From the NCBI GenBank assembly GCA_024704765.1, contig JAKMXF010000332.1, forward strand, positions 797,995 to 861,994: a stretch of DNA of 64,000 nt, in the 5' to 3' direction. The notes beneath the pieces are model-generated. The model was not told the origin of the DNA, did not search any database, and was given only the letters and a program-made list of their open reading frames with translations. The translations under genes and the position numbers were made by a program. Of the stretch, positions 9,541 through 56,152 are shown one piece after another (the stretch's first letter is position 1; every line of letters starts with the position of its first letter). This DNA is from Oopsacas minuta. Lineage: Eukaryota > Animalia > Porifera.

Positions 9541-10635
9541 CAAGGGTTGTTCATAAGTATTGAAACTAATGTATCGAATCCATATTCTAGTTAATACAGC
9601 TCTAAGCCTAGTATCAGATTACAAGCCTAATTTGATTGTATAAAATCTATACAAAATACTCTTTACTCTACTAGCATATTCTTCAGTATAAAGTTTAATT
9701 TGTATAGGCTACGTTTTTCAACTAATGAAATTTAGCAAAGAAGGAAAACGACAAATAATTTGGTCCAGTGGAAAAAGGGGAAAACTGGCTTATACATTCT
9801 TCGTGAAATGCAGGATATTTTCGGTGATGAATGTCCTACGAAAGCCACAATATATAGACGGATCGGACGCTTTGATAATGGCGATGTGGACCTCCACGAT
9901 AACCCTCGTCCAGGTTGTTCGACTTCCTCAAAAACCCGCAGTAATATCGAGAGGATCCAAACAATATTGGAAGAGGACATACGAATAACTCTGCGGGGGT
10001 TAGAAGAGGGGGTAGGTATATAAAGCCACATTACATTTGACTATCACTGAAGATCTGGAAATGTCGAAGGTAACTACGCGTTGGGTCCCAAAACTTCTTT
10101 CAAAATAACGCAAACACGAAAGGGTCAGAGTTAGCAAAGAATTACTTTTAAGATACAAGGCAGAGGAAGACTTTTTGGATCGTATAGTAATGGGGGATGA
10201 AACTTGGTTTCATTATTATGAACCAGAGAGCAAAACTCAATCGAAGCAGTGGAAGAGACGTGATGAACCTGTACCCATCAAGGCAAAGGCCGGAAAATCA
10301 GCAGGGAAGAGAATGGCAACAGTATTTTGGGATAGGGAAGGAATTATATACCTCGACTGGTTACCTGAGAAGACCACCATAAACAGTGATTATTACGTTG
10401 ACGAATTGAAAGAATTGCGTCAAGCGATTAAACAAGAGAGGTGAGGCAAGTTGACAAGCGGCGTATTGTTGCAACATGGGCTGGAAAAGTTACCAAAACG
10501 ATGGAAACGATGTATAAAGTTAAAGGGGGAAATCATCGAAACATTTGAAAATCAAATATGATGAGTATAGGTTTACTATATAGGTTTACTATAAAAATTA
10601 TGAATAAGGTCTCATTATTTATTGAACAACCCTTG
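9541..10635 (+). mobile_element. mariner element with internal deletion; transposase pseudogene ~9725-10556
   Basis: TIR caagggttgttca at both ends with TA flanks. WVPKLL and MGDETWFHYYEPE motifs are present. The DNA encoding the second and third catalytic D is deleted (jump from VLLQH to GLEKLPKRW). Confidence 0.92.
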
Positions 10636-11379
10636 TATAACTCTTTGAACTCACATCTAAAATGTCAACATCAGCCATGTATCGTTAGATTCGAATATAA
10701 TTACTGGTTTCGAATTTACATGATCCGAAATTTGTATAGGATGATGATGATTAGAAAACAATTTTTCACGTTCTTGTTCATTCTATTCATGTATGCGACC
10801 ATTGTTTGATTTTGTCGAAAAAGGAAATTCGAAGGATGTGGCAAAATTCACTTCACAACAAGATTCATCACTTTTGGAAATCCAATCGCTGTTTCTAATA
10901 ATACCAAAAATATTCTATAACAAGCTACTCGAGTAATTTCTTTGATAAACTTGAGGATGGAAAACTATAACAGACCAACACGTTACCCGGCGTTAAATGT
11001 GATACAAGTCGGAGTACAAAATCTTCAGGTGCTACGGTTTGACTTTCCCGTGAATACTTCAAACATTAAGTACAGGACAAAATTGTCTCCAGAATATTCT
11101 TTGTGTAAAGAATTTGAAAGCATCTAAATAAAATCAAGAATATTATAAATCTTAGCTTTAAAATAGTAAAAAACAAAAAACAATGAAAATATGCTTTATG
11201 TTGTGTTATTTTTAAAGAATGATAATTCATATCTCGGTTATTCTTTACACAACTGTAAAATACCTTAGAGAAACGGAACAAAAGAAAAGATACCGTAAAC
11301 AGGCAATTTGATAAGAAGCCATTGCGAGATATAAACACTTACTAATCACTAGCCCTCATTTTGTAAGAAATATCATGAA

Positions 11380-12100
11380 TGTTTATTGTAGTAAAATTTA
11401 TTCCCGTAAGCATTTTCGTAGCTTGTTCTGTTATAGCAAAGTCTGTTGTTGCAATTATAAATGTAATAACAGACGCTTATATATTTTCCAATGTTTGTAT
11501 CAAGTTTGATATGGTGATTCCGAATATGTGCTCTATATACTACAGCACGTCACAATTTTATTATAATCATGGAAAATGGGGAAACTGCTAAAATTTCCAA
11601 ATTTTTTCCTGTATATCAATGTAATTTCTCAAACTTCAATGAATTGCCGAACCTACGTGAAATTATGTCTCACAATTATCTGAAAGAGCTCTATACAACC
11701 GAAACAGGTGAATAACACTCCATAAATGATATAAGGTATTCTATTTATTTCACTATTTTTGCGTATTGTTTGAATTCCTTCCCAAAATTTACAGTTTCGG
11801 CTATACAGAAATCTCTTTGATTCTATATGTGTGGCAAATACCCTATTGTTCTCAAATATCTGTAATTTCTTGGTCATCACTCTCAAAGATAAAAAATATA
11901 ACCGAAGATTTAACAATTTTTGACATTTTCAAGTCTGATATTGTGGAATTGTTACGTAATAGAGAAAAATGGACTTCAGATTCGGAATTAGCGGAGAAAA
12001 TTTTAGAAAACATAAATTTTCTTGACCTGAGTAATTATAAATGCATACATATATATATATATATAGGACGCGGTCTATACCATACCTATGTTTAATATGA
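11380..12100 (+). repeat. Copy of an unclassified dispersed repeat (CMC/Transib-like subterminal motif)
   Basis: Shares tactacag(c/t)acgtcacaatttta (11531) and a gacttcagattcggaattagc motif (11984) with the minus-strand copy at ~31000-31800. Confidence 0.45.
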
Positions 12101-14508: not shown

Positions 14509-16416
14509 TATAAATCAGAGTCGACTAGAACAAAGAGTGATTCAATTGGGTTACGTAATTCAGAACGGCTTATCATGGAAAAAATATCCAATATGGAAAT
14601 TCATGTGAGTACTAAAACGTGGTAAAAGTAATGTAACACTAATATTATAAACAAATCTGGGTTATATAAAATGTGCAAGACACATATATATTCAATTTCG
14701 GACCAGAAAAATATGTCAAAAGTGTCATTTTGATGCTCAAATTTAGCTTTATTTAGCTTTAGTGGATATAACCTGAAACATATGGAATAATATAGTAGTT
14801 TACGGATATATAAGCATAGCATTTGAATATATCATTTATAAGTAAAAAATTGCATGTCATTTCTAGCCAATGATTCAATTTCATTGGATCCTGAAACATT
14901 ACACAAAGAGTGGCAAGTTCAACTATATTTATAAATGGGGGAAAGATCTAGAATACTTTTGAACATGATTTACATTCAGTAGTCAAACTTGATAAGTAGG
15001 CAATAATTTATAATTTCCCGAGGGCATGCCATATCCGAGTTTTTGTGTATTTTAAACAAAGTAAGGATATCAATATTCATGACCATATATAGCAATTATA
15101 AGATAAAATAGGCATAAAATTGATATAATAAATATATGAATGGTGAAACAAGTTCCCAAGAATTGTATTAATTATTAGCCAAAAATAGGTGAGTTGGAAA
15201 ATTCTAACGTTCTTACCAATGTGACGTAATGATTAATCATAATATCCAATTCCAACAAATATCCTTCACAACACATGTTGTTTACATTATCATATTTAGA
15301 ATCAGCATATTCGATTATCACAATGTGGGTATTGTTTACATTTATGACGCTAACAGAAAGAAACTTAAATACAATAGTGGATGTAGAGATTTTGAGATTG
15401 TGGAGAGGTTTAGGGAGGATAACTATGAATCTTTAACAGGTTCCCAATTTTGCAATACGAGCGTGTGCTTTGTTGCCCTCACTGTCCGGCATCGGAATAA
15501 AATCATGTCAGTGTGGAGCTCGGTGATTGTTGCCTTGAATATTATTTGCTAACACAAATATTAGATAAGAAAAGGTTGGGATTGAGAGATTTGGAATCAG
15601 CGAACAGAAATGCAAAGGACAAGGTAGAAAACAGTTTTGTGACTCTTTAGAAAAAGAATGCGATAAAAATGTAAAATAGTGAACTACAAGCATTAACAAA
15701 TGGTTTGCCTATATCCAGATCCGCCAAGAGGGGGGGGCAATTGCCCAATGGCTGGACCCAGAAATGGCTAGGGATTACATGGACTATCTTGGAAAGTGAT
15801 AGGATAAATGGACATATCTGTAAATAATAGAGTTGAAATAAAGATCGAATTGTTTCGAATTGTTTGCATGCATACTCGTTCTAATACATACTTAAGGTAC
15901 TGTATAGTAGGATAACTTACTAAATGAATATTACTGGTTCATTCTTGTCAATGTCATCCCCCCAGAATTTATAGAAAAGTCATATTTCCAAATTGCAACA
16001 TGTTTTAACATTTGATGCCATGATTATATAGCACCGTTGCCAATTCTTGTGAGAAATAGTTTGAATATTATAGGTAGAAAGTCAAGATCTTTGGAAATAC
16101 ATATTTATCATTCGAATCATGAGTTAATATCGATTACAGTGTGGAACATAAAAGAGAAGAGAACATGATGACAAGAGGAGACAATCAAAGAAAAGCAAGC
16201 GAACTCTTTTTGAATTTGGGATGGATTTAACACCACAATCTATACCTTAGCCACTTGAGTCTCAAGCTAACAATACATGCAGTGGTGATAACGTCGAAAA
16301 CAAGAGATTTCTAGATGAAGATAGTAGTGTTCTGAATGTACAAGCATCCTATTCTACTGTTGTTCAGTCAGGAAAATCTAGATTTGATATTGGAACAATT
16401 TTCGTGATACCTACCG

Positions 16417-33345: not shown

Positions 33346-33794
33346 ATGATCACCAGAGTTGATTAGAGAAATACGCTTGTTAAATTCTTAGTTCATAACT
33401 TTCAGTACTTGTTAAATAAATTAGATTTACTTGATGTATACAATGGTTGGACTATCAAAGATAATAAATATAAATCATTATTTTATGTAAAATAGTCATA
33501 TCAGGTCAGACATCGTACATTAAAAGGACACTAAAAATTGACGAGAATTAAATACTCATGCGTTAGATATGGGAAAACACTTAATCCGGGTATCAGTATC
33601 CAAGATTGATGACATACGTGAAATTGAGACCATTATAGATGAAATAGAACTTTATAAATTACAACTGCAAATTCCCAAAGCTAGCACTTTAGTACAAACT
33701 TATGTAGGAATCGCGATAAAATGAAATAAACTGCACAAATTCCTCTATTAACAAACATGTTCGATATATTTAGTGAGTTATTTAAAAGTGAGTA

Positions 33795-33804
33795 GCGCAT
33801 GCGC
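33795..33804. promoter_or_regulatory. GCGCATGCGC palindrome (NRF1-type core) in the left TIR
   Basis: Centre of a perfect 16-bp palindrome gtagcgcatgcgctac (33792-33807). Confidence 0.8.
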
Positions 33805-34028
33805 TACATTAATATATAATTGGAATTTTGGAAAAAAGTAGGCTCTCAAAATACATCCTATTATAGTGTAATTAAATCCGCAGGAACTGATATTAATTTT
33901 TGAGTTTTGTTACTTATTTCTACTTCCTTTATTAGCAAAATCCCTAAATATGTTTCTCAATTAACTTTATACTTTACTCAATCAGTGTTTCCTCTTGATT
34001 TCCCATTCTGTACCCTTGAGTAGCCAAA

Positions 34029-35744
34029 ATGCCAAAGATCCCCAAATTGACAAAGAATAATGCTATAATGGTACTGACAGACATATTATCTGAGTTTCGT
34101 TCAGTAACAGGTGAATATACCGGAGCTGTATTTTCATGGCATGGAAAGCTTGGCTCTTTGGGTCCAGAAAAATTTCAAAGCTATATCACTGGGAATAGCG
34201 CTGAAATATCAAGAACTCTACTGACTAACCAAATATCTACAATTACGTCGGCGTCATCAAAGCCTGTCCGTGATCACGAAATCCTCAAGCTATTAGATGG
34301 AGATATATCTAGCTATAATGTACAGGGACTGCGAAGACTTGTTTCTGCGATTATAAAAGTGTCAACTGGTAAGTCAACGGTGTGAATTTATATAATTATA
34401 TGGGTCACTGATTATATATCTCTGTATTTTAGGGAAAGGTATGTTTTTTTGGAATGATCCTTCTCTCAAACCACCTTTTTGGCCCGAAAGAGTCCCTTTC
34501 GAAAACAGAAAAAGCGCATGTAAGATTCATCTGCGTATGATAATAGAATCATATAAGGATTACTCTATGAAAGCGCGAGTTTCAGTTCGCCCTCAATCTC
34601 AGAAGTCTCCAAGCTCTTCTCAAGCATCGCGACATGATATCTACCGTGACCGATCTAGATCTCCTCTTGATTTCGCTAGAGATGTAATACACCAAGAATC
34701 TGATGTAGATACTAGTGATGATTCCTTCGATGAGCTTTTTCAGCAACCCGTTATCGCTTCGAACAAACCTATTTCAGATCCTCAAACACCTACCCAACTT
34801 CCAGTCTGGTGACATTACTCGGAGTTAAGCCATTGGATCCTATCCAAATAATCACTCTTCCCATTAGTTTAAATGAGAAAAACTTGTCAATTTCTGAATT
34901 GTCAAGTCGTAATACTTTCCTAACAGGCACCACCATTAATGCATTCTGTGTAAGTTTATTATACATTGAAATTCAATCCGTTTTGTTAGCAAATATTCTC
35001 ATACCATATATGTATTTGTAGACATTACTGAAGAAGAATTTCCCCCATTTACAGGGACTTCAGGATACTATTCTCTTCGAAGTGAGTTTCTCGGTTCAAA
35101 TTTTTGAATTTTAAATCAATATTTGATATTCAATTAATTCTTAGAATCGTCAATTCGTCAAAGCTCCTCGTCCTAGTATGCAGCTGCATCACGATGGCGC
35201 ACTTCACTGGGTTTGCTCCAGTATTGATGTTGAAGGGCATGTAACTTTATATGATTCGCTATCTACTGGGAGAATATCTGATGAATTAGCTGTGCAATTG
35301 GCCTTTCTATATGAGAATGATGCTGATCATGAGCTGAAAGTCGCCCTTGCTCCTATTCAGCAGCAAAGAGGTGGGGCGGATTGTGGTTTATTTGCAGCGG
35401 CAGTCTGTTTGACAATAGCAACGGGAGGCGACCCAACCCAAGTATACTGGAAACAGTCAAGAATGAGATCTTACCTAACTGATTGTTTCAACAGCGAAAT
35501 TTTGATACCCTTTCCTAAGATAGAAAGCATAGTATTACGATCTCGCCTGACTACAAATCTAGGGACATATTTAAAGATAAAGTTATGGTGTTTATGTCAT
35601 CTACCCAGTTGCGCGTCAAAAAATATGATTGAATGTCCCAAATGTCTTAAATGGTTCCACAAACCATGTGTAGGACTTGAAGATATTGACAAAGACATCG
35701 ATAACTTTTATTGTCACAATTGTCGTGAGTCTCCTAACATATAA
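34029..35744 (+). CDS. Transposon accessory gene: NRF1/EWG-like DNA-binding domain, S/P/Q-rich linker, Ulp1-like C48 protease, PHD finger (4 exons, one frame break)
   Basis: Predicted exons 34029-34368, 34433-34949, 35022-35081 and 35145-35744, separated by GT-AG introns of 64, 72 and 63 nt that preserve frame. One frame break near 34770-34810. Motifs: IKVSTG|KGMFFWNDPSLKPPFWPERVPFEN; LHWV...YDSL...QQQRGGADCGLF; CLC...MIECPKCLKWFHKPC...YCHNC. Confidence 0.85.
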
Positions 35745-35751
35745 ACTATTT

Positions 35752-38700
35752 TCATATATTATTATTTTGTGATAGAATATGTAGATTCAAACATGCTAGA
35801 AAATATCTTGTAGTGAAGAATACATTATCAATACGCATATATGCGATTTGTGTTGCTATCCTTCTTAGTGATGAAAACAACTGCTCGCAAATTTGTGAGT
35901 TTAGCTTTTTCATCTCGTCAGTCTGAATTGATCTGAAAGAATAAGAGGGATTGCACTTGTGGTTTGTAGAATGGAATCGATCAATCAGAAATGTTGTCTT
36001 ACGAAATACTTTGGGTCCCTATATAAAAAATCACGAATTAATTTCTATTTGAAATCTCGATTATTTATCATTTATACCCAATTTGTTATGTGCACTTACC
36101 TTTTCATACATGTTTTGTGTAAGTTGCAAGCATTATCGTAGATGATCACTTTTGGCTGTTCTCTGAATATGGTCATTAACAAATTATAAATTACAACTGT
36201 AGATTCGTGTTGTCTGAGGATTTGGAAACCATAACAAATCCTGTGCTTACAAGCGATTGCTACTATTCCGGGGGAAAACCTTTTGTGAGTTGGAAACTTT
36301 TTGAGACACGGTTCAGCTGACTCAACTTCAGGATTTTCGTATACTGGCAACCTGTACAATTATAGTAGAATGGTAAAATATAAAAAAAGTTGAATAGCAT
36401 TTAGTATTTTCAGTATAAACACAATTACAAGTTTGAACTTACATGTAGTTTGTTGTGAATGCTGGGAAATAATTGTAATAGTTTTCGCTTTGTGGAGAAT
36501 ATTTCTACTAATTTTCTTGACGTTCTACTAAATAAACTCTCTATTTGTGTCAGGATTCTTTTCAACAGCGGGAAAACTTTGGGATGTAAAGTGACAAACC
36601 CTGTGCATGTGATATCTTTATTAGGTTTGATAGAATTGAATAAGATATCCAATGTATACATCTTCTGATATAATGAATTAAAGGAATCTTCACTTGCTGA
36701 TTTTCCATTGGCAAGAAGAGCTATTGCTTTTCGTTCATTCGGTTCCAGCAGAGAGAATTGGAATACTCCTGATATTGGATCTGTATGGCAAAGGAGTTTT
36801 ATGACTTTCTTAACGTGTATATATTCTTCACTTATAGTCACTAAATTTTCTGTTAAATATAATCAGCCATTTCTTTATGAATAGACTTCAATAGGTCTTT
36901 TAGCGTATTTTCTGTCAAACCTTCAGAACAGAATTTAAGGAGTTGCTTTCTAATTGCTGTGTTGGGGATAAAAACACGATCTGAAAATGGGATCATAGGG
37001 TATTACTGATCCTGATCGAATTTTGCATCCACTTCTGGTACTGATTTCATTGTTCCCATCGCTATGCCATCTAAAATTATCACATCGGGATGATTTTTAC
37101 ACTTTGTACATATGTAGTTCGAGTCATAATCTATGTCTACTGTTCTCAGATAGGCGTTCCATACCTGATAAACAATGTGATAATGGAATGTATTCGTTCT
37201 ACCCATTCTGATAAGCTTCCTGTTCTTGGCACTAAAGAGTAAAACGAAGAATTAGATTGTATGTATATAGGAATTTTAATTTATCAAGAATATTATTTTA
37301 AACAATACATACCTCAAGTAACCGTACAAAGTATTTCTAGACATGGTCATCAACTCGCTATAATCATATAACAAACTGTAATGAACAAAGCACTTGTTGA
37401 TGTTTAACAGTAAACTGTTCTGACCTTCGAAGACTGCCAAACAATTGCAAGGTCCACTGCATCTTGAACTGTAAACTATATACTTACAATATAATTACTG
37501 AGTTACCAAGCACAGGCAAATTTAGGGAGGGGGTAAATTAGGACGAGTTGATTGCAATCGAATGAACAATCTTATATGTAGACCAAATAATTATTGAAAT
37601 TCCTTATAATTGCAAAGACTTGTTTTCAACGGCTAAATACGTAGAAAAACCGATCATACTAAATTAATATTGCGACCGAGCGAATGGTTCATTGATGATA
37701 AATATATACCTTTGTAATCTTTGAATTCTTTAATATCATTTTCTAAATAGATAACTATTCCAACCTTCTCTAGTTTAAGCTTCTCCTCTTCATTGAATTT
37801 GAAACCATAGTCACAAAATTCCTTTTCAGGATACATGTTTAAAGGTAAATTGATGCCATGGCAGAGCTGATGGTTGTAAATTGCTATTTGGCTTTCATCT
37901 AGATTGAATGGTATTGCTCTTGTTGATATCGTGTTATATTCAAACTTTTTTTGTGTATTTGATCCAGTATTTTCGAGAATATTATGGAGTCTAGAATGTT
38001 GTTTGCACTTTGAAGAACAAGAACAACATAACCACCTATCATTATTTAATTGGAAGTTGTGAAAAGTATCATCTGTCAACAGAAAGATATCGTTAGGACT
38101 TGGGAAATAATATATTATGTCTTCTAGAATGTTTACTTCACAAACTTGCAAACAATCATTTTGTGAACAGAGTTCAAATGTTTGATAATGAGAACAAGTA
38201 TCACTATAACAATTAGCGCATAGATTGCTGTTTGTTTCAATTATGATTCTCCTTTTGTTTAGTACAACGGTTCCTTGAAATACAAAATGTTTAGTTATGG
38301 TAGTGAGAATAGTAAATGTACAGTAGACTCCGATTAATAGGGTCACTTGGGACCAGGCCATTTGACCCGATTAACCGAAATAAAGGTGTTGGGCACTACG
38401 AACCGGAGCAGAGAGACAAACATGCAAACAGACAACAATAATAGCGATAATAACGTAAATTTACCTTGAGAGTAATCATAATCTGCAATTATAACATATT
38501 CACTATCCTCTAACTTATGTATGTGAGACTTCAATATCAATAGTTTTACATACTGGTCAATTATAGGCATTTCTACTTGTTTCATTTCTGGTTCTGAGAA
38601 GCAATCAGGTTGACACTGATCTATGCGAAATATTATATTGAATCAACAAGCAACTAAAGTTTGCTTGAAAGCATAAGGAATTAAGAATATAATTATCACC

Positions 38701-38880
38701 TGGTTTTGACCATGTTGGTACATCTGATTCTATCAATTTTAATGATTCCCCTTCTGATAGGCATACTTTGTCGATGTCTAATGTGATGAAGCTGATATCT
38801 TCTTTCTCCGAGATTTTTCGTTTTTTTGGGTATATATTATCAGATCCAGTTTGTGAAGTTACTTTTTCAGCCATTTCCAA
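35752..38880 (-). pseudogene. Multi-exon KDZ transposase (SWIM-like and CxC cysteine clusters plus KDZ catalytic domain; HMGXB3 C-terminal-like), several lesions
   Basis: WLCCSCSSKCKQH; RCSGPCNC...LLN...YSLLYDY; CTKCKNHPDVIILDGIAMG; SPGIVAIACKHRICYGF; IIYDNACNLHKTCMKR; FLIDRFHSTNHKC; LNSQICEQLFS. Frame-consistent introns at 38621-38699 and 38396-38464, plus a GT-AG intron at 36019-36099. In-frame TAA at 37003-37005 and frameshifts near 36850, 36480 and 36000. Confidence 0.88.
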
Positions 38881-39075
38881 AATGAAATTATCTAACGAAT
38901 GGTATAAATTTATATATCTACTTCTATCATTATAAATGCACCAGCATTCCAGTGACCACTTGTCGTAATGTGGTTTCGAAACTTATCTAATCACATTCAA
39001 TTCAGCAGCTTGGGTAACTATGGTTGAAATGATAATGCGTATCTATAAATATGACATACCAATAATCCTAATGCA

Positions 39076-39108
39076 GCGCATGCGCTACTCAAAATGCAGC
39101 GCATGCGC
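39076..39108. promoter_or_regulatory. Two GCGCATGCGC palindromes (39076-39085 and 39099-39108) in the right TIR
   Basis: 23-bp tandem duplication aatgcagcgcatgcgctactcaa. Confidence 0.8.
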
Positions 39109-39124
39109 TACTCATTTTTAAATA

Positions 39125-40497
39125 CAGTGCGTTCGGAAATTATTGGCAGTGAATTTGATTTGGTTCCATTCAATATCTATGTTAAGAATGATCAAAATCA
39201 TATGATTTCTAATAATTCGGTACTCTCTCAAATAGAATATACATGAGTAACTAACATATAGCTAATAATTTATCTTCTTACCTCCACCTTTGATGCATAA
39301 CCGAATTCTTTTGTCCATTGATAGACAAAATGGCTTTAAAAATTCAGGGTCAAATGTGTTCCATATCTCCAAAATAGCTTCTTTCAACTCATTTGAGCTA
39401 GTAAATCTCTTTTTGAGGAGTCTCTTCTTTAGTACAGCCCAAAGATTTTCAATTGGGTTCAGATCGGGGCTATTGGAGGGCCAGTCAATCGGATGTGGGA
39501 CAAATTCCTGTTTCCAAGCCTTTGCTGCATTTCCTGTATGTATAGGACTGTTATCTTCCTGTAATATCCATTTATTTCCGTATAAAGCATTAGCTTCTTG
39601 TATAAGACACTCATTTAGAACTGTTTTGTATCGTTCCTGGTTGAAGTTTTCGGTAAAAACTTTGAGGTTTGTTTTGCGCATTACCGAAATACCACCCCAA
39701 ATATGTAGCTTCGCTGGATGTTTGAAAGTTGGCAGGTTAATGGGCTGTCCTTTCTTTGTCCATACATATATCTTTCCTGAATTCATCCATATAGAGGATT
39801 CATCAGTAAAGAACACTTTAGACCAGTTCTGACCCCTCATTCGTTTACACCATTCCATTCGTTTAGTAATATGGAGTTGTGACAAGGCTGGAATTCTTAC
39901 TGCCTGGTGATATTGTAAGCCTCTCCTCTTCATTTCCTCCGATAGTGTGCTTTTGGCAACTGGAGTACTCAATTTTGATCAACATTCATTCAGAGTGATC
40001 CTTGGATTGTGTTGAACGAGTGCCATAATCCTATTCCTATCAGACTTGTGCAATATTTGAGGTCGACCTGCTCCTTTCTTATGAGTCAAGCTCTTTTTGT
40101 CAGAAATAGACTTCAAAACACGATATACTGTCCGCTCTGGTATAGCTAGTCGTCTTGATATTTCAGTCGCTTTTGTTATCCCAGCATCAAAGAGTTCCTT
40201 TATTCTGATTCTATTCTTTTCCTGAGCCTTCATACCAAAATTGTGGAAAAATATTGTTAGTGAAAGTCGGAAAATATGGGTCTAAAATGTGTGAACAAAA
40301 ATAATAAGCACATATTTAATGTCAAAGATCATTTGGGATAGATAAGGCAGAAAATTAGAATGTCAGTGGATCTATACATTATATTTCGAGTATATTATAT
40401 GTTGCTATAACTTAGACGTCGTAAATAAGGTTGTTTTAGAATATTTATAAAGGATAATGAAAATAGTATTTACTGCCAATAATTTCCGAACACACTG
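39125..40497 (-). mobile_element. Tc1 (DD34E) element; transposase 40233-39262 with a single in-frame TGA at 39979-39981
   Basis: 30-bp TIR cagtg(c/t)gttcggaaattattggcagt(g/a)aat; flanks TA and TG; FTDES and QEDNSPIH-(34)-PIEN motifs. Confidence 0.95.
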
Positions 40498-52175: not shown

Positions 52176-53506
52176 TCAGGGCGTTTAATAAATCTTGCGG
52201 GTCATGATATATCTTAGGAATTAGTCAAGTAATATATCTAACTTTCATATATTATAAGCCCATATAGTTAAGCTCCATATACTGAAAGTTTCAAGCTTAT
52301 TCCATACAAATTACTAATTTTTGAGATAGTTACTTGTAGTCAATTTATACCCACTGTTGAATTTATGGCTTCAAAGGATGATAATTTCAATCTCAAATGG
52401 CGAGCTTACAAAGAGTTTCGCACAATTCTCAAGATCCAGCCCGTACAGATCTTCAGCGAGTTACAGGGGGTATTGTGCGTGGATTGCCCTTCCAGATCTA
52501 CTCTAGAGCGATGGGCTGCCCGTTTGAGATCTGGTGATGCTGATGTCACAGATTCGCCTTGATCTGGAAGACCGGTATCCGCCACCACTTCAGAGAATAT
52601 CGCACTCATTGAAAGTATAGTCTGGAAGACAAGTGCATTACTGTCAATCAGTTAGAACAAAGTATAGAGATTTCATCGGGAGCTATTCATACAATTCTGA
52701 CGACTGAGTTGGCTATCGATCGATTTGTGGGAAATGAGTCCCGCATAAGCTCAGTGAGAATCAAAGGTTGGCACGACTGAATATTGCCAAGAAACTCTTG
52801 GAAACTTATGAGATCTGCGATTCTAGACGCCTAACAGATATTATTACTGGTGACGAGACGTGAGTGTACTATTCAACACCAAATAGCAAGTATAAGAAGC
52901 GATCATGGGTGAGGGGCGACGAACAACCGGCGAAAGTTCCTAGGCCCGACTTCAGAAAACCTAAGATTATGTATACCATCTTCTTCAGTAGTCATGGAAT
53001 TGTCTTGCAATTACCTTGTGAGAGTGGCAAGGCTATTACTACTACTTTCTTTACAGAGCAAGTGCTTCCAAATTTGATAAAAAATATAGAAAAGTACCGC
53101 CCGAAAACCGGAACTCGAGGAATGAAGATTTTAATTGATAACGCCAGTTCCCATACATTGAGCTACCAAAAATATCTTGGATGTAGAAGAGTTAGAAATA
53201 CTTCCCCATCCACCATACTCCCCAGACTTAGCTCCTTGTGATTTTTGGCTATTCCCCAACCTTAAAATCTACCTTCAAGGCAAAGATTTTAACACATTAC
53301 AAGCACTCGGAAGGGCCTGTACCAGTACTTCAAATCCATCCCCGAAGAAGAGTACCGAAATGTGTTTTACAAGTGGGTGGAAAGGTTAAAACTTTGTGTA
53401 TCTGCAGGAGGGGATTACTTTGAATAAATAATACAATGAATTAGTGTGTATAGTGTTTGTATCATATTCTATGATATCACCCGCAAAGACTTATTGAACG
53501 CCCTAG
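52176..53506 (+). mobile_element. mariner element (~1.33 kb); transposase pseudogene 52365-~53427
   Basis: TIR ..agggcgtt(t/c)aataa..ctt(t)gcgggt with TA flanks; ITGDET, DNASSH and PPYSPDLAPCDF motifs; stops and frameshifts. Confidence 0.93.
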
Positions 53507-53835
53507 TATTTGGTACTTAAGCAGGAATATTTGGTACTTTAATCGTGCTAATTTGGTACACACATTTATGTTGAATATTAGCGATATTGAATGGAACGTC
53601 TTTGTCAATTATGAATGATACTTACCTAGATTACGATTAGGCCAGCAACAATGCAATGCCTCGAGGTATGAATACGGGATATGCAAAAGAGAAAATTTCA
53701 CTTTATCTGGAGCGATTCTCACAGTTAACTAGTGAGAAATCAGAATTGAGTTTACTTGGCTAGGGAATTTGCCGATGCTCAGTAACGAGACATTCAAGAA
53801 TTTTACGATCTGATTCACTCTGATTTCAATGATAA

Positions 53836-56152
53836 CACAGCCCTGCGGAATAAAAAATTTTATTTGCTGATTGTTATTGCAAAACATTTTCTAATCCACA
53901 TTTTAATACTGATTTTGAATAATTTTGTAAAATATACGTATCACGTCTAGTTTTTTTGCAAAATTATTTTTAAATATTGGTATATTTATCGATGAATGCA
54001 TGATACCTCTACAAGTAAAATAGTGAAAATCTGCCATTTATAAATTTTTACTAAGAATTACAATAAAATTTTTATTGATAATATAATCTTAGTTAATAAA
54101 TAATTTGAATATATTAGTCTGAATCAGGAGTAAATTTCCGTTTTTTTGACATTCTAGCATGAATAACATCAATACAATCTCTCTTGAGGCACCAGCAGTA
54201 ATCAGCCATCATATGAACGTCCCACCTCCCCTGATATCGTGTTTCCATTGTTTTTATGTCTTGGTGGAATCGTTCACCTTGCTCCTCGGAAACAGCTCCA
54301 AGATTCTCTGGAAAATAGTCAATATGACTGTGAAGAAAGTGAACTTTTACACTCACATTGCAGCCGAGATTCTTGTAAGATTCAATCAACTCATTCACAA
54401 GTATTTTATAATTAGGAGATTTCGTTTTTCCCAAGAAGTTTTTCATGACATCTACAAATGCATTCCATGCACATTTTTCTTTGCATATCATAGAATTTGA
54501 AAAATTATCATCTCGAACAAGTTGTCTTATCTGAGGACCGTCGAATATACCGGCAATTCTTTTTTCATCACTTAGATAGTAAAACTTCTCGGTAATATAT
54601 TTGAAACAATTTCCTTCTTTATCTAATGCCCTTACAAACTGTTTCATCAATCCTAATTTTATATTAAGTGGTGGAAGCAAAATCTTGAGAGGATCCACTA
54701 GATGCTCGTGAATAATGTTCTTATCTCCAACATTAAGATTGGTTCTAGCTGGCCAGCTCTGTCTAGAATAGTGTTCGCTCTTTGCACGACTGTCCCATAA
54801 GCATAAAAAACAAGGGTATTTTGTATATCCTGATTGCTGTCCCAAAAGAATACATATGATTTTTAAGTCACCACAGATTACCCAATTGTGCTGGTTATAA
54901 TTAATTTTATGAAGCACAATTTTCATGTTATCATATCGTTCCTTTAAACTTACTAAATGTCCAATTGGTATGGAACTAAATTTGTTGCCATTATGAAGTA
55001 GAACACATTTCAAACTTTGTTTTGAACTATCAATAAAGAGTCTCCAATCATTAGGTACATACGGACATCCAAGAGCATTAACTAGCGGTGAAACATCATG
55101 ACAAAACACAAATCCGTCTTCCATTATGAAATATTTCAAAAATTCGATCTCTCTGTCCCTATATGAGTAAAATTTTGTTTCTGGGAGAAGCAAGTTTTTT
55201 TCTTTTAGCCTAGAACCTAACAACGCAGATTCTTTAGGTAAATCTAAATCACGTACCAAATCATTTAATTCAGACTGATTAAATAACTGTGGAGAATTAG
55301 AACGAGATAATACACACGGAATAAAATCCTCATCTTCTCTGATTAATGAATCTCTAGTTTCACAATCATCAATTTCCGAGATAACATCCAAATTAGTAAA
55401 TTTTGGAACAGGTACATCAATAGAATGGGGAACGGGTCGTATTGCTGAATGTAAATTTGGATACTTGATCAATGACTTGGTTTTAGCATTGAATCCGGAA
55501 ATATTCGCCATACAAAAGTAACAATTGCTAATGTGATTTTGTGGCTCTCTCCATATCATTGGAATTCCAAAACTTAAACTCTTTCTGATTCCTTTTGTCC
55601 ATTGTCTCAAATTTTCTACACAAGATCGGCACACTGTATGTGGAGCCCATGTTTTGTCTTGATCACCTAATCTCATTCCAAAATATCCTAAATATGCTTT
55701 TTTAACAAATCCTGTTATTGCCGTAGTTTGTTTAGAAGTCATAAAACTCCCACAAATATAACAAAAGACGTCTGGATCATTACTGCACCTTCTCCGATAA
55801 GCCATATGATAATAAAATATCAAAATAGTAGACTATAGTACAATAAAGCTGTATATAACAAAAATAAAGATAAAAAAAATTATGTAGAAAAGAATGGAGT
55901 TAAAGGGACTAATTAGAAAATGCAATAAAGCACGCATCTGTTTATTTCAAAAGACAAAAATTCACACATGTATCAAATATAATCATTTATTCTAGGGAAG
56001 TGTACTTAAAAAAATCGACTTACATTAAAATGACATTTGAGTAAAAACGAGACATGATAGGGGAATTCTGATGACAGATTGAGAATCAGCATACTCAAGT
56101 TAACTAAAAACAACCCATGGATAATAATCAGCAAATTTGACGCAGGGCAGTG
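53836..56152 (-). mobile_element. Full-length Chapaev3 (CMC superfamily) transposon, 2317 bp
   Basis: TIR cac(a/t)gccctgcg; 3-bp TAA TSD at 53833-53835 and 56153-56155; shared subterminal tttgctgatt motif. Confidence 0.9.
54114..55823 (-). CDS. Chapaev3 transposase, uninterrupted 569-aa ORF
   Basis: CYICG...GDQDKTWAPH.VC..C...PMIWREP...CYFC zinc finger; FIDSS, ICGDLK and EQGERFHQD catalytic motifs; KLGLMKQFV. Confidence 0.9.
   Translation of the reverse strand: MIFYYHMAYRRRCSNDPDVFCYICGSFMTSKQTTAITGFVKKAYLGYFGMRLGDQDKTWAPHTVCRSCVENLRQWTKGIRKSLSFGIPMIWREPQNHISNCYFCMANISGFNAKTKSLIKYPNLHSAIRPVPHSIDVPVPKFTNLDVISEIDDCETRDSLIREDEDFIPCVLSRSNSPQLFNQSELNDLVRDLDLPKESALLGSRLKEKNLLLPETKFYSYRDREIEFLKYFIMEDGFVFCHDVSPLVNALGCPYVPNDWRLFIDSSKQSLKCVLLHNGNKFSSIPIGHLVSLKERYDNMKIVLHKINYNQHNWVICGDLKIICILLGQQSGYTKYPCFLCLWDSRAKSEHYSRQSWPARTNLNVGDKNIIHEHLVDPLKILLPPLNIKLGLMKQFVRALDKEGNCFKYITEKFYYLSDEKRIAGIFDGPQIRQLVRDDNFSNSMICKEKCAWNAFVDVMKNFLGKTKSPNYKILVNELIESYKNLGCNVSVKVHFLHSHIDYFPENLGAVSEEQGERFHQDIKTMETRYQGRWDVHMMADYCWCLKRDCIDVIHARMSKKRKFTPDSD

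Follow-up and report, generated by a model that had tools for sequence, protein, structure and literature searches.

Why a sponge transposon should encode a domain resembling that of an animal transcription factor, and whether this domain binds the ends of the very element that encodes it, are the questions raised by a 64-kb stretch of Oopsacas minuta DNA (contig JAKMXF010000332.1; ~35% G+C), hereafter called the window. The transcription factor concerned is NRF1, which is sensitive to methylation and is one of the main regulators acting on promoters in animals. Its DNA-binding mode was called novel when solved, and its fold has no known relatives outside the NRF1 family. The segment 34029-34545 is best read as part of a cut-and-paste transposon with two genes (33779-39124), similar to the Zisupton/Kyakuja/Dileera (KDZ) elements, in which it encodes the N-terminal module of an accessory protein. 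Sequence comparisons and a predicted structure suggest, with a probability that we put at about 0.7, that this NRF1-like module binds the subterminal palindromes of its own element, GCGCATGCGC, as a predicted dimer.

Homology of the transposon module to NRF1

The homology between the transposon module and NRF1 is real. Removal of intron 34369-34432, which has GT..AG ends, reproduces the peptide quoted in the preliminary description, and the 14/31 ungapped identities with human NRF1 reported there were obtained again, the NRF1 peptide given for that comparison being in agreement with the PDB chains 8k4l/8k3d. For the pairwise test the NRF1 segment was the sequence of the PDB chains as printed by HMMER. 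The best local alignment of the spliced window protein with this segment covers 41 residues without gaps, spans the splice junction and contains 17 identities (score 93); none of 2000 shuffles reached it (Gumbel p ~1e-8). The pair LRRLV/LRAFI, named earlier as a further match, falls inside this alignment, whereas the pairing of LRMIIESYK with LRTIVKNCY is backed by the range of the structural superposition only.

An exhaustive search with exon 1 gave 45 relatives, mostly fragments of exon-1 open reading frames (ORFs) together with a few spliced gene models of O. minuta. One of these gene models, P0010, is 44% identical to window exon 1 and scores 25.4 bits (E=1.4e-5) against Pfam PF10491 (Nrf1_DNA-bind), and 27.5 bits (E=3e-6) when residues 1-170 are taken, the gathering cut-off being 23.5 bits. 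Its two best PDB matches are NRF1 chains, and its automatic name in UniProt is 'Nuclear respiratory factor 1 NLS/DNA-binding dimerisation domain-containing protein', with no mention of the element context. The Pfam check proposed in the preliminary description was thus positive for the relative but not for the window exons, which gave no NRF1 match when scanned one by one because the signal straddles the intron. In PDB searches, NRF1 was not found with exon 1 alone and was matched weakly by exon 2 alone (E=0.8); a protein-atlas query with exon 1 was uninformative. A family profile combining P0010 with exon pieces from the window and from four further loci matched the NRF1 structures 8k3d and 8k4l (E=8e-7), and the PDB match that came after them had E=0.22. 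Alignments with more exon-1 rows placed exon-2 pieces wrongly and were therefore discarded, and the smaller alignment was used.

The fold was compared by means of an AlphaFold model of P0010 residues 1-175, made from an alignment of 13 rows (predicted local distance difference test, pLDDT, 71.3). The model shows a helix (6-24), two strands (30-34 and 37-41), a second helix (44-60), a linker, a helix at 92-107, a long loop and a helix at 138-152. The three top Foldseek matches in PDB are NRF1 structures (8k4l_B with E=5e-5 over 174 columns; 8k3d with a root-mean-square deviation (rmsd) of 2.0 A over 74 columns), followed by the MADS domains of SRF, MCM1 and SEPALLATA3. VIA-align gave a Z score of 8.8 for 8k4l_B (aligned span 141-174 positions by Foldseek/VIA-align), 8.1 for the DNA-binding domain of 8k3d (rmsd 2.5 A, 77 residues) and 6.5 for the SRF MADS domain on P0010 residues 1-65, the stretch that the MCM1 MADS domain also matches. 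In the Swiss-Prot part of AFDB the five best matches are Ewg, P3A2 and the NRF1 of human, zebrafish and mouse, so that the structural comparison asked for earlier leads to the NRF1/Ewg/P3A2 family by Foldseek, VIA-align and AFDB alike. The nearest structural relative of the NRF1 dimerisation domain is the SRF MADS domain (PMC10810270). Because the first domain of the model matches this MADS domain too, the transposon protein is predicted to reproduce both NRF1 domains in the same order. The predicted dimerisation domain in exon 1 of the window copy is a helix, beta-hairpin and helix at about residues 4-65, counted in the spliced window protein from the ATG at 34029.

The NRF1-like DNA-binding domain (P0010 model residues 86-151) also aligns with the repeat domains of GTF2I (VIA-align Z 5.1), and when the P0010 model is searched against the Swiss-Prot part of AFDB, members of the TFII-I family are found at ranks 6-16.

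The accessory gene is a homologue of the NRF1 DNA-binding module and no NRF1 orthologue, because it is multi-copy (word depth hundreds to thousands), lies between inverted repeats and encodes a C-terminus made up of Ulp1 protease and PHD finger domains. The same NRF1-like/Ulp1/PHD architecture was seen in the related elements L008 and L009. In L002, an OTU deubiquitinase-type domain (10395-11702) follows the NRF1-like module in place of Ulp1 and PHD, and then comes a long 182-nt tandem array; since OTU is found there where the others have Ulp1, the protease partner is exchangeable.

Element ends and their palindromes

The exact count of GCGCATGCGC, a motif with two CpGs, is three in the window (33795, 39076 and 39099), with none expected from 100 shuffles. 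All three copies lie in the element ends, one at the left and two at the right, and each is flanked by A...T, both just as the preliminary description had it. The terminal inverted repeats (33779-33810 and 39093-39124) are 32 nt long and match at 94%, and at the right end a motif-bearing unit of 23 nt is tandemly duplicated (39063-39085 and 39086-39108). The left copy is placed 16 nt inward of the terminus and 234 nt 5' of the ATG of the NRF1-like gene, and the right block ~200 nt 5' of the ATG of the transposase. Between the repeats the two genes are convergent, the accessory gene on the plus strand and the transposase gene on the minus strand (Table 1). No clean target-site duplication was seen around the window copy.

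Contigs were compared for nine exon-1 relatives, 257 kb being examined in total. Wherever ends were found they share one terminus, which reads TATTAAAAAGTAC or differs from it slightly, with a 10-bp palindrome ~16 nt inward, mostly repeated with a 22-nt period, and the offset of the palindrome from the common terminus is constant across elements. In the ends of eight related elements the palindrome is either of the GCGCATGCGC type or one of the CATG-centred variants ACACATGTGC, GATCATGATC and GCGCATGCTC. Exon-1 identity to the window is 35-45% among the related elements and 83% for L002. The GCGCATGCGC type is found in L009 (P0030; 3 copies left, 11 right), L011 (P0008; 12 copies in total), the left end of L007 (P0009; an exact copy and a partial one) and the left end of L002 (two copies with one mismatch), while in L008 (P0014) the site is TGCGCATGCGCA, the full NRF1 12-mer (1 left, 3 right). 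The variants are represented by GCGCATGCTC in L003 (P0012; three units), ACACATGTGC in L001 (P0005; 6 left, about 5 right) and GATCATGATC in L004 (P0007; 8 left, 7 right). The expectation that related elements carry the palindrome in their ends was borne out: every exact copy of GCGCATGCGC in the 257 kb (34/34) lies inside an element end, and none was found near host genes in the same sequence.

For L005 and L006, exon 2 and the element ends were not seen, and the contig of L010 was too short to judge. The P0036 exon-1 ORF (L005 3671-5975; L006 7987-13869) is enclosed by long inverted duplications, which in L006 extend over 2 kb and are 99% identical. In L007, a tandem unit of ~57 nt with an 18-nt palindrome, ACTATACTATAGTATAGT, lies beside the left end (9580-9760) and again ~6 kb downstream (15711-16022), each unit terminating in CAGTAAAAA, which is similar to the element terminus.

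The variant palindromes retain the CATG centre, and each is homogenised across both arms in elements whose genes still have open exons. Because the variants are homogenised within a subfamily, this argues for a reader of the ends that is encoded by the element and changes along with its sites, rather than for a conserved host factor.

In NRF1 the base contacts are made by R206, N242 and R244, and it is R206 that reads the CATG centre of the palindrome (PMC10810270). According to the same paper, binding of the full palindrome by NRF1 requires the dimerisation domain as well as the DNA-binding domain. The equivalents in the window protein are R101, N137 and K139. The R206 equivalent is retained in nearly all exon-1 sequences of the family and the N242 equivalent in 7/9 elements, whereas five residues (K, T, S, Y and R) occur at position 244. 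For a covariation of motif and domain, which the preliminary description had proposed to look for, the nine elements are suggestive at most. L004 (S at 242, R at 244) and L001 (N at 242, Y at 244) are unique, but elements with GCGCATGCGC also vary, both at 242 (N, K) and at 244 (K, T, S). As position 244 varies among the GCGCATGCGC elements, no simple residue-to-base covariation emerges from the nine elements.

Reader of the ends: proposed mechanism and alternatives

In the mechanism that we favour, the accessory protein would dimerise via its N-terminal domain, and the two DNA-binding domains would each read one TGCGC half-site of GCGCATGCGC, the outermost conserved 13 nt (TATTAAAAAGTAC) being left to the transposase. 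Such binding may serve to mark the two ends and pair them before the transposase acts, a role played in En/Spm by TnpA. It could also deliver the Ulp1 protease and PHD finger, being parts of the same protein, to the promoters of the element, because the palindrome blocks lie ~200 nt 5' of both inward-facing genes, and would then serve regulation or anti-silencing.

Several observations weigh against binding of the ends by this protein. The match of the dimerisation domain is one of predicted structure alone (pLDDT 71, 13-row alignment), and a family profile of this domain made from exon 1 only does not retrieve NRF1 by sequence. Within the DNA-binding domain the R244 position is K, K, K, T and S among elements that share GCGCATGCGC, and by our reading of the alignment the ~11 residues that hold the NRF1 backbone contacts K253, W258 and T259 are missing. 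The Cys-rich N-terminus of the transposase could read the palindrome instead. The NRF1 alignment does cross the predicted splice junction, as had been claimed in support of the gene model, but the junction 34368/34433 is absent among the RNA-derived contigs, in which only unspliced contigs span the intron. Finally, the frame of the window copy shifts at ~34794 relative to an Oopsacas homologue.

As regards the gene model, intron 34369-34432 is backed by 8 loci in which the exons are divided at this point and by gene models from NCBI, three in number, and introns 34950-35021 and 35082-35144 are spliced out in RNA-like contigs. GT..AG and CT..AC joints were found for both genes in the contigs of one run; transcription and splicing of the family follow from this. 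The window copy itself, judged from its sequence, is probably dead. Its open frame ends after 239 residues, just beyond the NRF1-like module, most family copies in contigs of four public runs carry an extra C after 34792, and more indels relative to the majority of copies are found at 36012, 36502, 36853, 37393, 38360 and 38927.

Among the alternatives, the palindromes may be promoter elements for the host NRF1 that drive both genes of the element, and the NRF1-like protein, having no activation domain, would compete with the host factor or modulate it. The position of the motif blocks, ~200-235 nt 5' of both start codons, is in line with this, as NRF1 sites are classic promoter elements (PMC10810270), and the site in L008 is the full NRF1 12-mer. 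However, any change in the GCGC repeat strongly weakens NRF1 binding (PMC10810270), and for that reason the subfamilies with homogenised GATCATGATC or ACACATGTGC arrays would lose the host NRF1. Moreover, 11-14 units arrayed with a spacing of 22 nt are what is typical of transposon subterminal sites and not of promoters, and the motif is at no host gene in the 257 kb. We regard this explanation as unlikely, but it is compatible with self-binding, and the two may well coexist.

It is also conceivable that the KDZ-like transposase reads the palindromes and that the NRF1-like module binds NRF1-type sites of the host, either for steering of insertion or for delivery of Ulp1 and PHD. The Cys-rich N-terminal region of the transposase could bind DNA, and subterminal repeats are bound by many transposases themselves. 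Yet a coincidence of ~1 in 1000 would be needed for the site of the transposase, one of 4^5 ten-base palindromes, to equal the family consensus of its neighbour. No motif copies were found beyond the element ends in the 257 kb, and the NRF1 site is absent from the insertion flanks. This makes a transposase reader decidedly improbable. That the NRF1 likeness or the end motif is due to chance, or that the module is a dead captured host fragment with no function, would be in keeping with the frameshift of the window copy and the lack of a Pfam match from the window exon pieces alone, but is hardly credible given that significance was reached in each of the profile, pairwise and structural tests and that at least 8 elements of 35-85% identity have kept the module with its exons open and its intron in place, always within inverted repeats. 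Binding of the ends by the NRF1-like module thus remains the reading that we prefer.

Transposon class, significance and known systems

The transposase exons are conserved between loci, and the sole Pfam match of one of them is KDZ (PF18758, profile positions 75-135), found in the window, L001, L008 and L009 with scores of 14-19.7 bits, below the cut-off of 26.6 in all four elements. Inverted repeats are present in the window, L001, L004, L008, L009 and L011. L004, L009 and L011 are flanked by target duplications of 8 bp, whereas those of L001 and L008 measure 7 bp, the L008 pair having one mismatch; examples are AAATCTAA, CAAAATTG and CTTTCTTG. Zisupton makes target duplications of 8 bp and Kyakuja of 7 bp (PMC12730594). 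The duplications seen here fit these two lengths. The KDZ label is a tentative one, taken from the sub-threshold Pfam matches and the 7-8-bp target duplications. Between the common terminus and the target duplication there are four asymmetric bases (CATA ... CCTC) in L001, L004, L008, L009 and L011; the NRF1-like gene is faced by the CATA end in three elements and by the CCTC end in two. These asymmetric outer bases and the 7-8-bp target duplications speak against a TTAA target.

Table 1. Parts of the transposon, in positions of the 64-kb window
Feature	Position	Strand	Basis or remark
Left terminal inverted repeat; begins TATTTAAAAGT; one GCGCATGCGC at 33795-33804	33779..33810	.	motif and repeat search
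Accessory gene, exon 1: predicted dimerisation domain, linker, first DNA-binding helix with LRRLV	34029..34368	+	
Predicted 64-nt GT..AG intron, phase 1, cutting the Gly codon of STG/KG	34369..34432	+	position kept in all related loci
Start of exon 2: FWNDPSLKPPFWPERVPFENRKS and next helix, completing the NRF1-like DNA-binding domain	34433..34570	+	
Ser/Pro/Asp-rich linker; 1-nt deletion after 34792, stop 34810-34812	34571..34812	+	
Remainder of accessory gene, in other frame in window copy: Ulp1/C48-like protease and PHD finger	34794..35744	+	Pfam
Multi-exon transposase gene, KDZ/Zisupton-like; several indels relative to majority of copies	35752..38880	-	Pfam, below cut-off
Right end: tandem 23-nt unit in two copies, with GCGCATGCGC at 39076-39085 and 39099-39108; right terminal inverted repeat 39093-39124	39063..39124	.	

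A second copy of the NRF1-like gene in the window was not found by tblastn; with a hidden Markov model, a decayed second copy of exon 1, split over 2 frames (53641 and 53736), was seen at ~53641-53810. This decayed copy (53500-53810) is preceded by three ATTTGGTAC units ~22 nt apart, which are not palindromes. Within the second decayed element there is also an intact 569-residue ORF on the minus strand (54114-55823), of unassigned family and with a Cys-rich N-terminus, which is probably another mobile element. Past the right end of the KDZ-like element, at ~140 nt, lies an ORF for a Tc1/mariner-type transposase on the minus strand (39262-39972; DDE_3, E=4e-20).

No link of the NRF1 domain or motif to transposons was found in the literature searched, and the present one would be the first of NRF1 to mobile DNA. 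It offers a testable scenario, in which the NRF1 module was either captured or originated there. The three or four palindromes with their matching proteins are natural specificity variants, useful for studying how the fold reads DNA. The accessory protein would be of a new kind for KDZ-like transposons, in which a sequence-specific predicted dimer is combined with a histone reader and a protease of SUMO type, and this fusion hints at self-targeted anti-silencing. One may further speculate that the NRF1/EWG/P3A2 family goes back to an ancient KDZ-like transposon, whose accessory protein for binding the ends was domesticated near the base of the animals. We consider such an origin doubtful; if true, the glass-sponge elements would be surviving relatives of the source, with GCGCATGCGC, ACACATGTGC and GATCATGATC and their proteins as a natural series of co-evolved protein/site pairs.

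Compared with NRF1/EWG/P3A2, the transposon protein has the same predicted layout, a MADS-like dimerisation domain and then a DNA-binding domain of helix, long loop and helix, shares the signature STG.G..W....KP..WP...P..N and the equivalents of R206 and N242, and is encoded beside the cognate palindrome GCGCATGCGC. It differs in having Ulp1 and PHD (OTU in L002) instead of the C-terminal activation region, K at the position of R244, and ~11 residues fewer between the loop and the next helix. The model is ~15-20% identical to human NRF1, and the dimerisation domain of the transposon protein is unrecognisable by sequence. With the KDZ elements the present element shares its KDZ-only Pfam match, target duplications of 7-8 bp and terminal inverted repeats; it differs from them in scores below the cut-off, in an accessory gene of NRF1-like/Ulp1/PHD type in place of TET/JBP, in its glass-sponge host and in the asymmetric outer four bases.

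DNA-binding folds that are common to transcription factors and transposases include THAP, BED, paired, WRKY/GCM1 and CENP-B. As in these cases, a fold of host transcription factors is found here also in a mobile element together with its sites; unlike them, the domain is part of an accessory protein and not of the transposase. In the En/Spm (CACTA) system the accessory protein TnpA binds subterminal repeats and TnpD cuts. That system shares with ours the possession of two genes, a short motif repeated in both subterminal regions and in both orientations, apart from the outermost terminus, and an overlap of the motif regions with the element promoter. There is no sequence kinship between the two, the TnpA motif is a 12-mer and not a 10-bp palindrome, and here protease and histone-reader domains are part of the same protein as the predicted binder. 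By analogy, TnpA of En/Spm would be the closest functional analogue of the NRF1-like accessory protein, and the conserved 13-nt terminus and the variable palindrome arrays at 22-nt spacing fit such a comparison.

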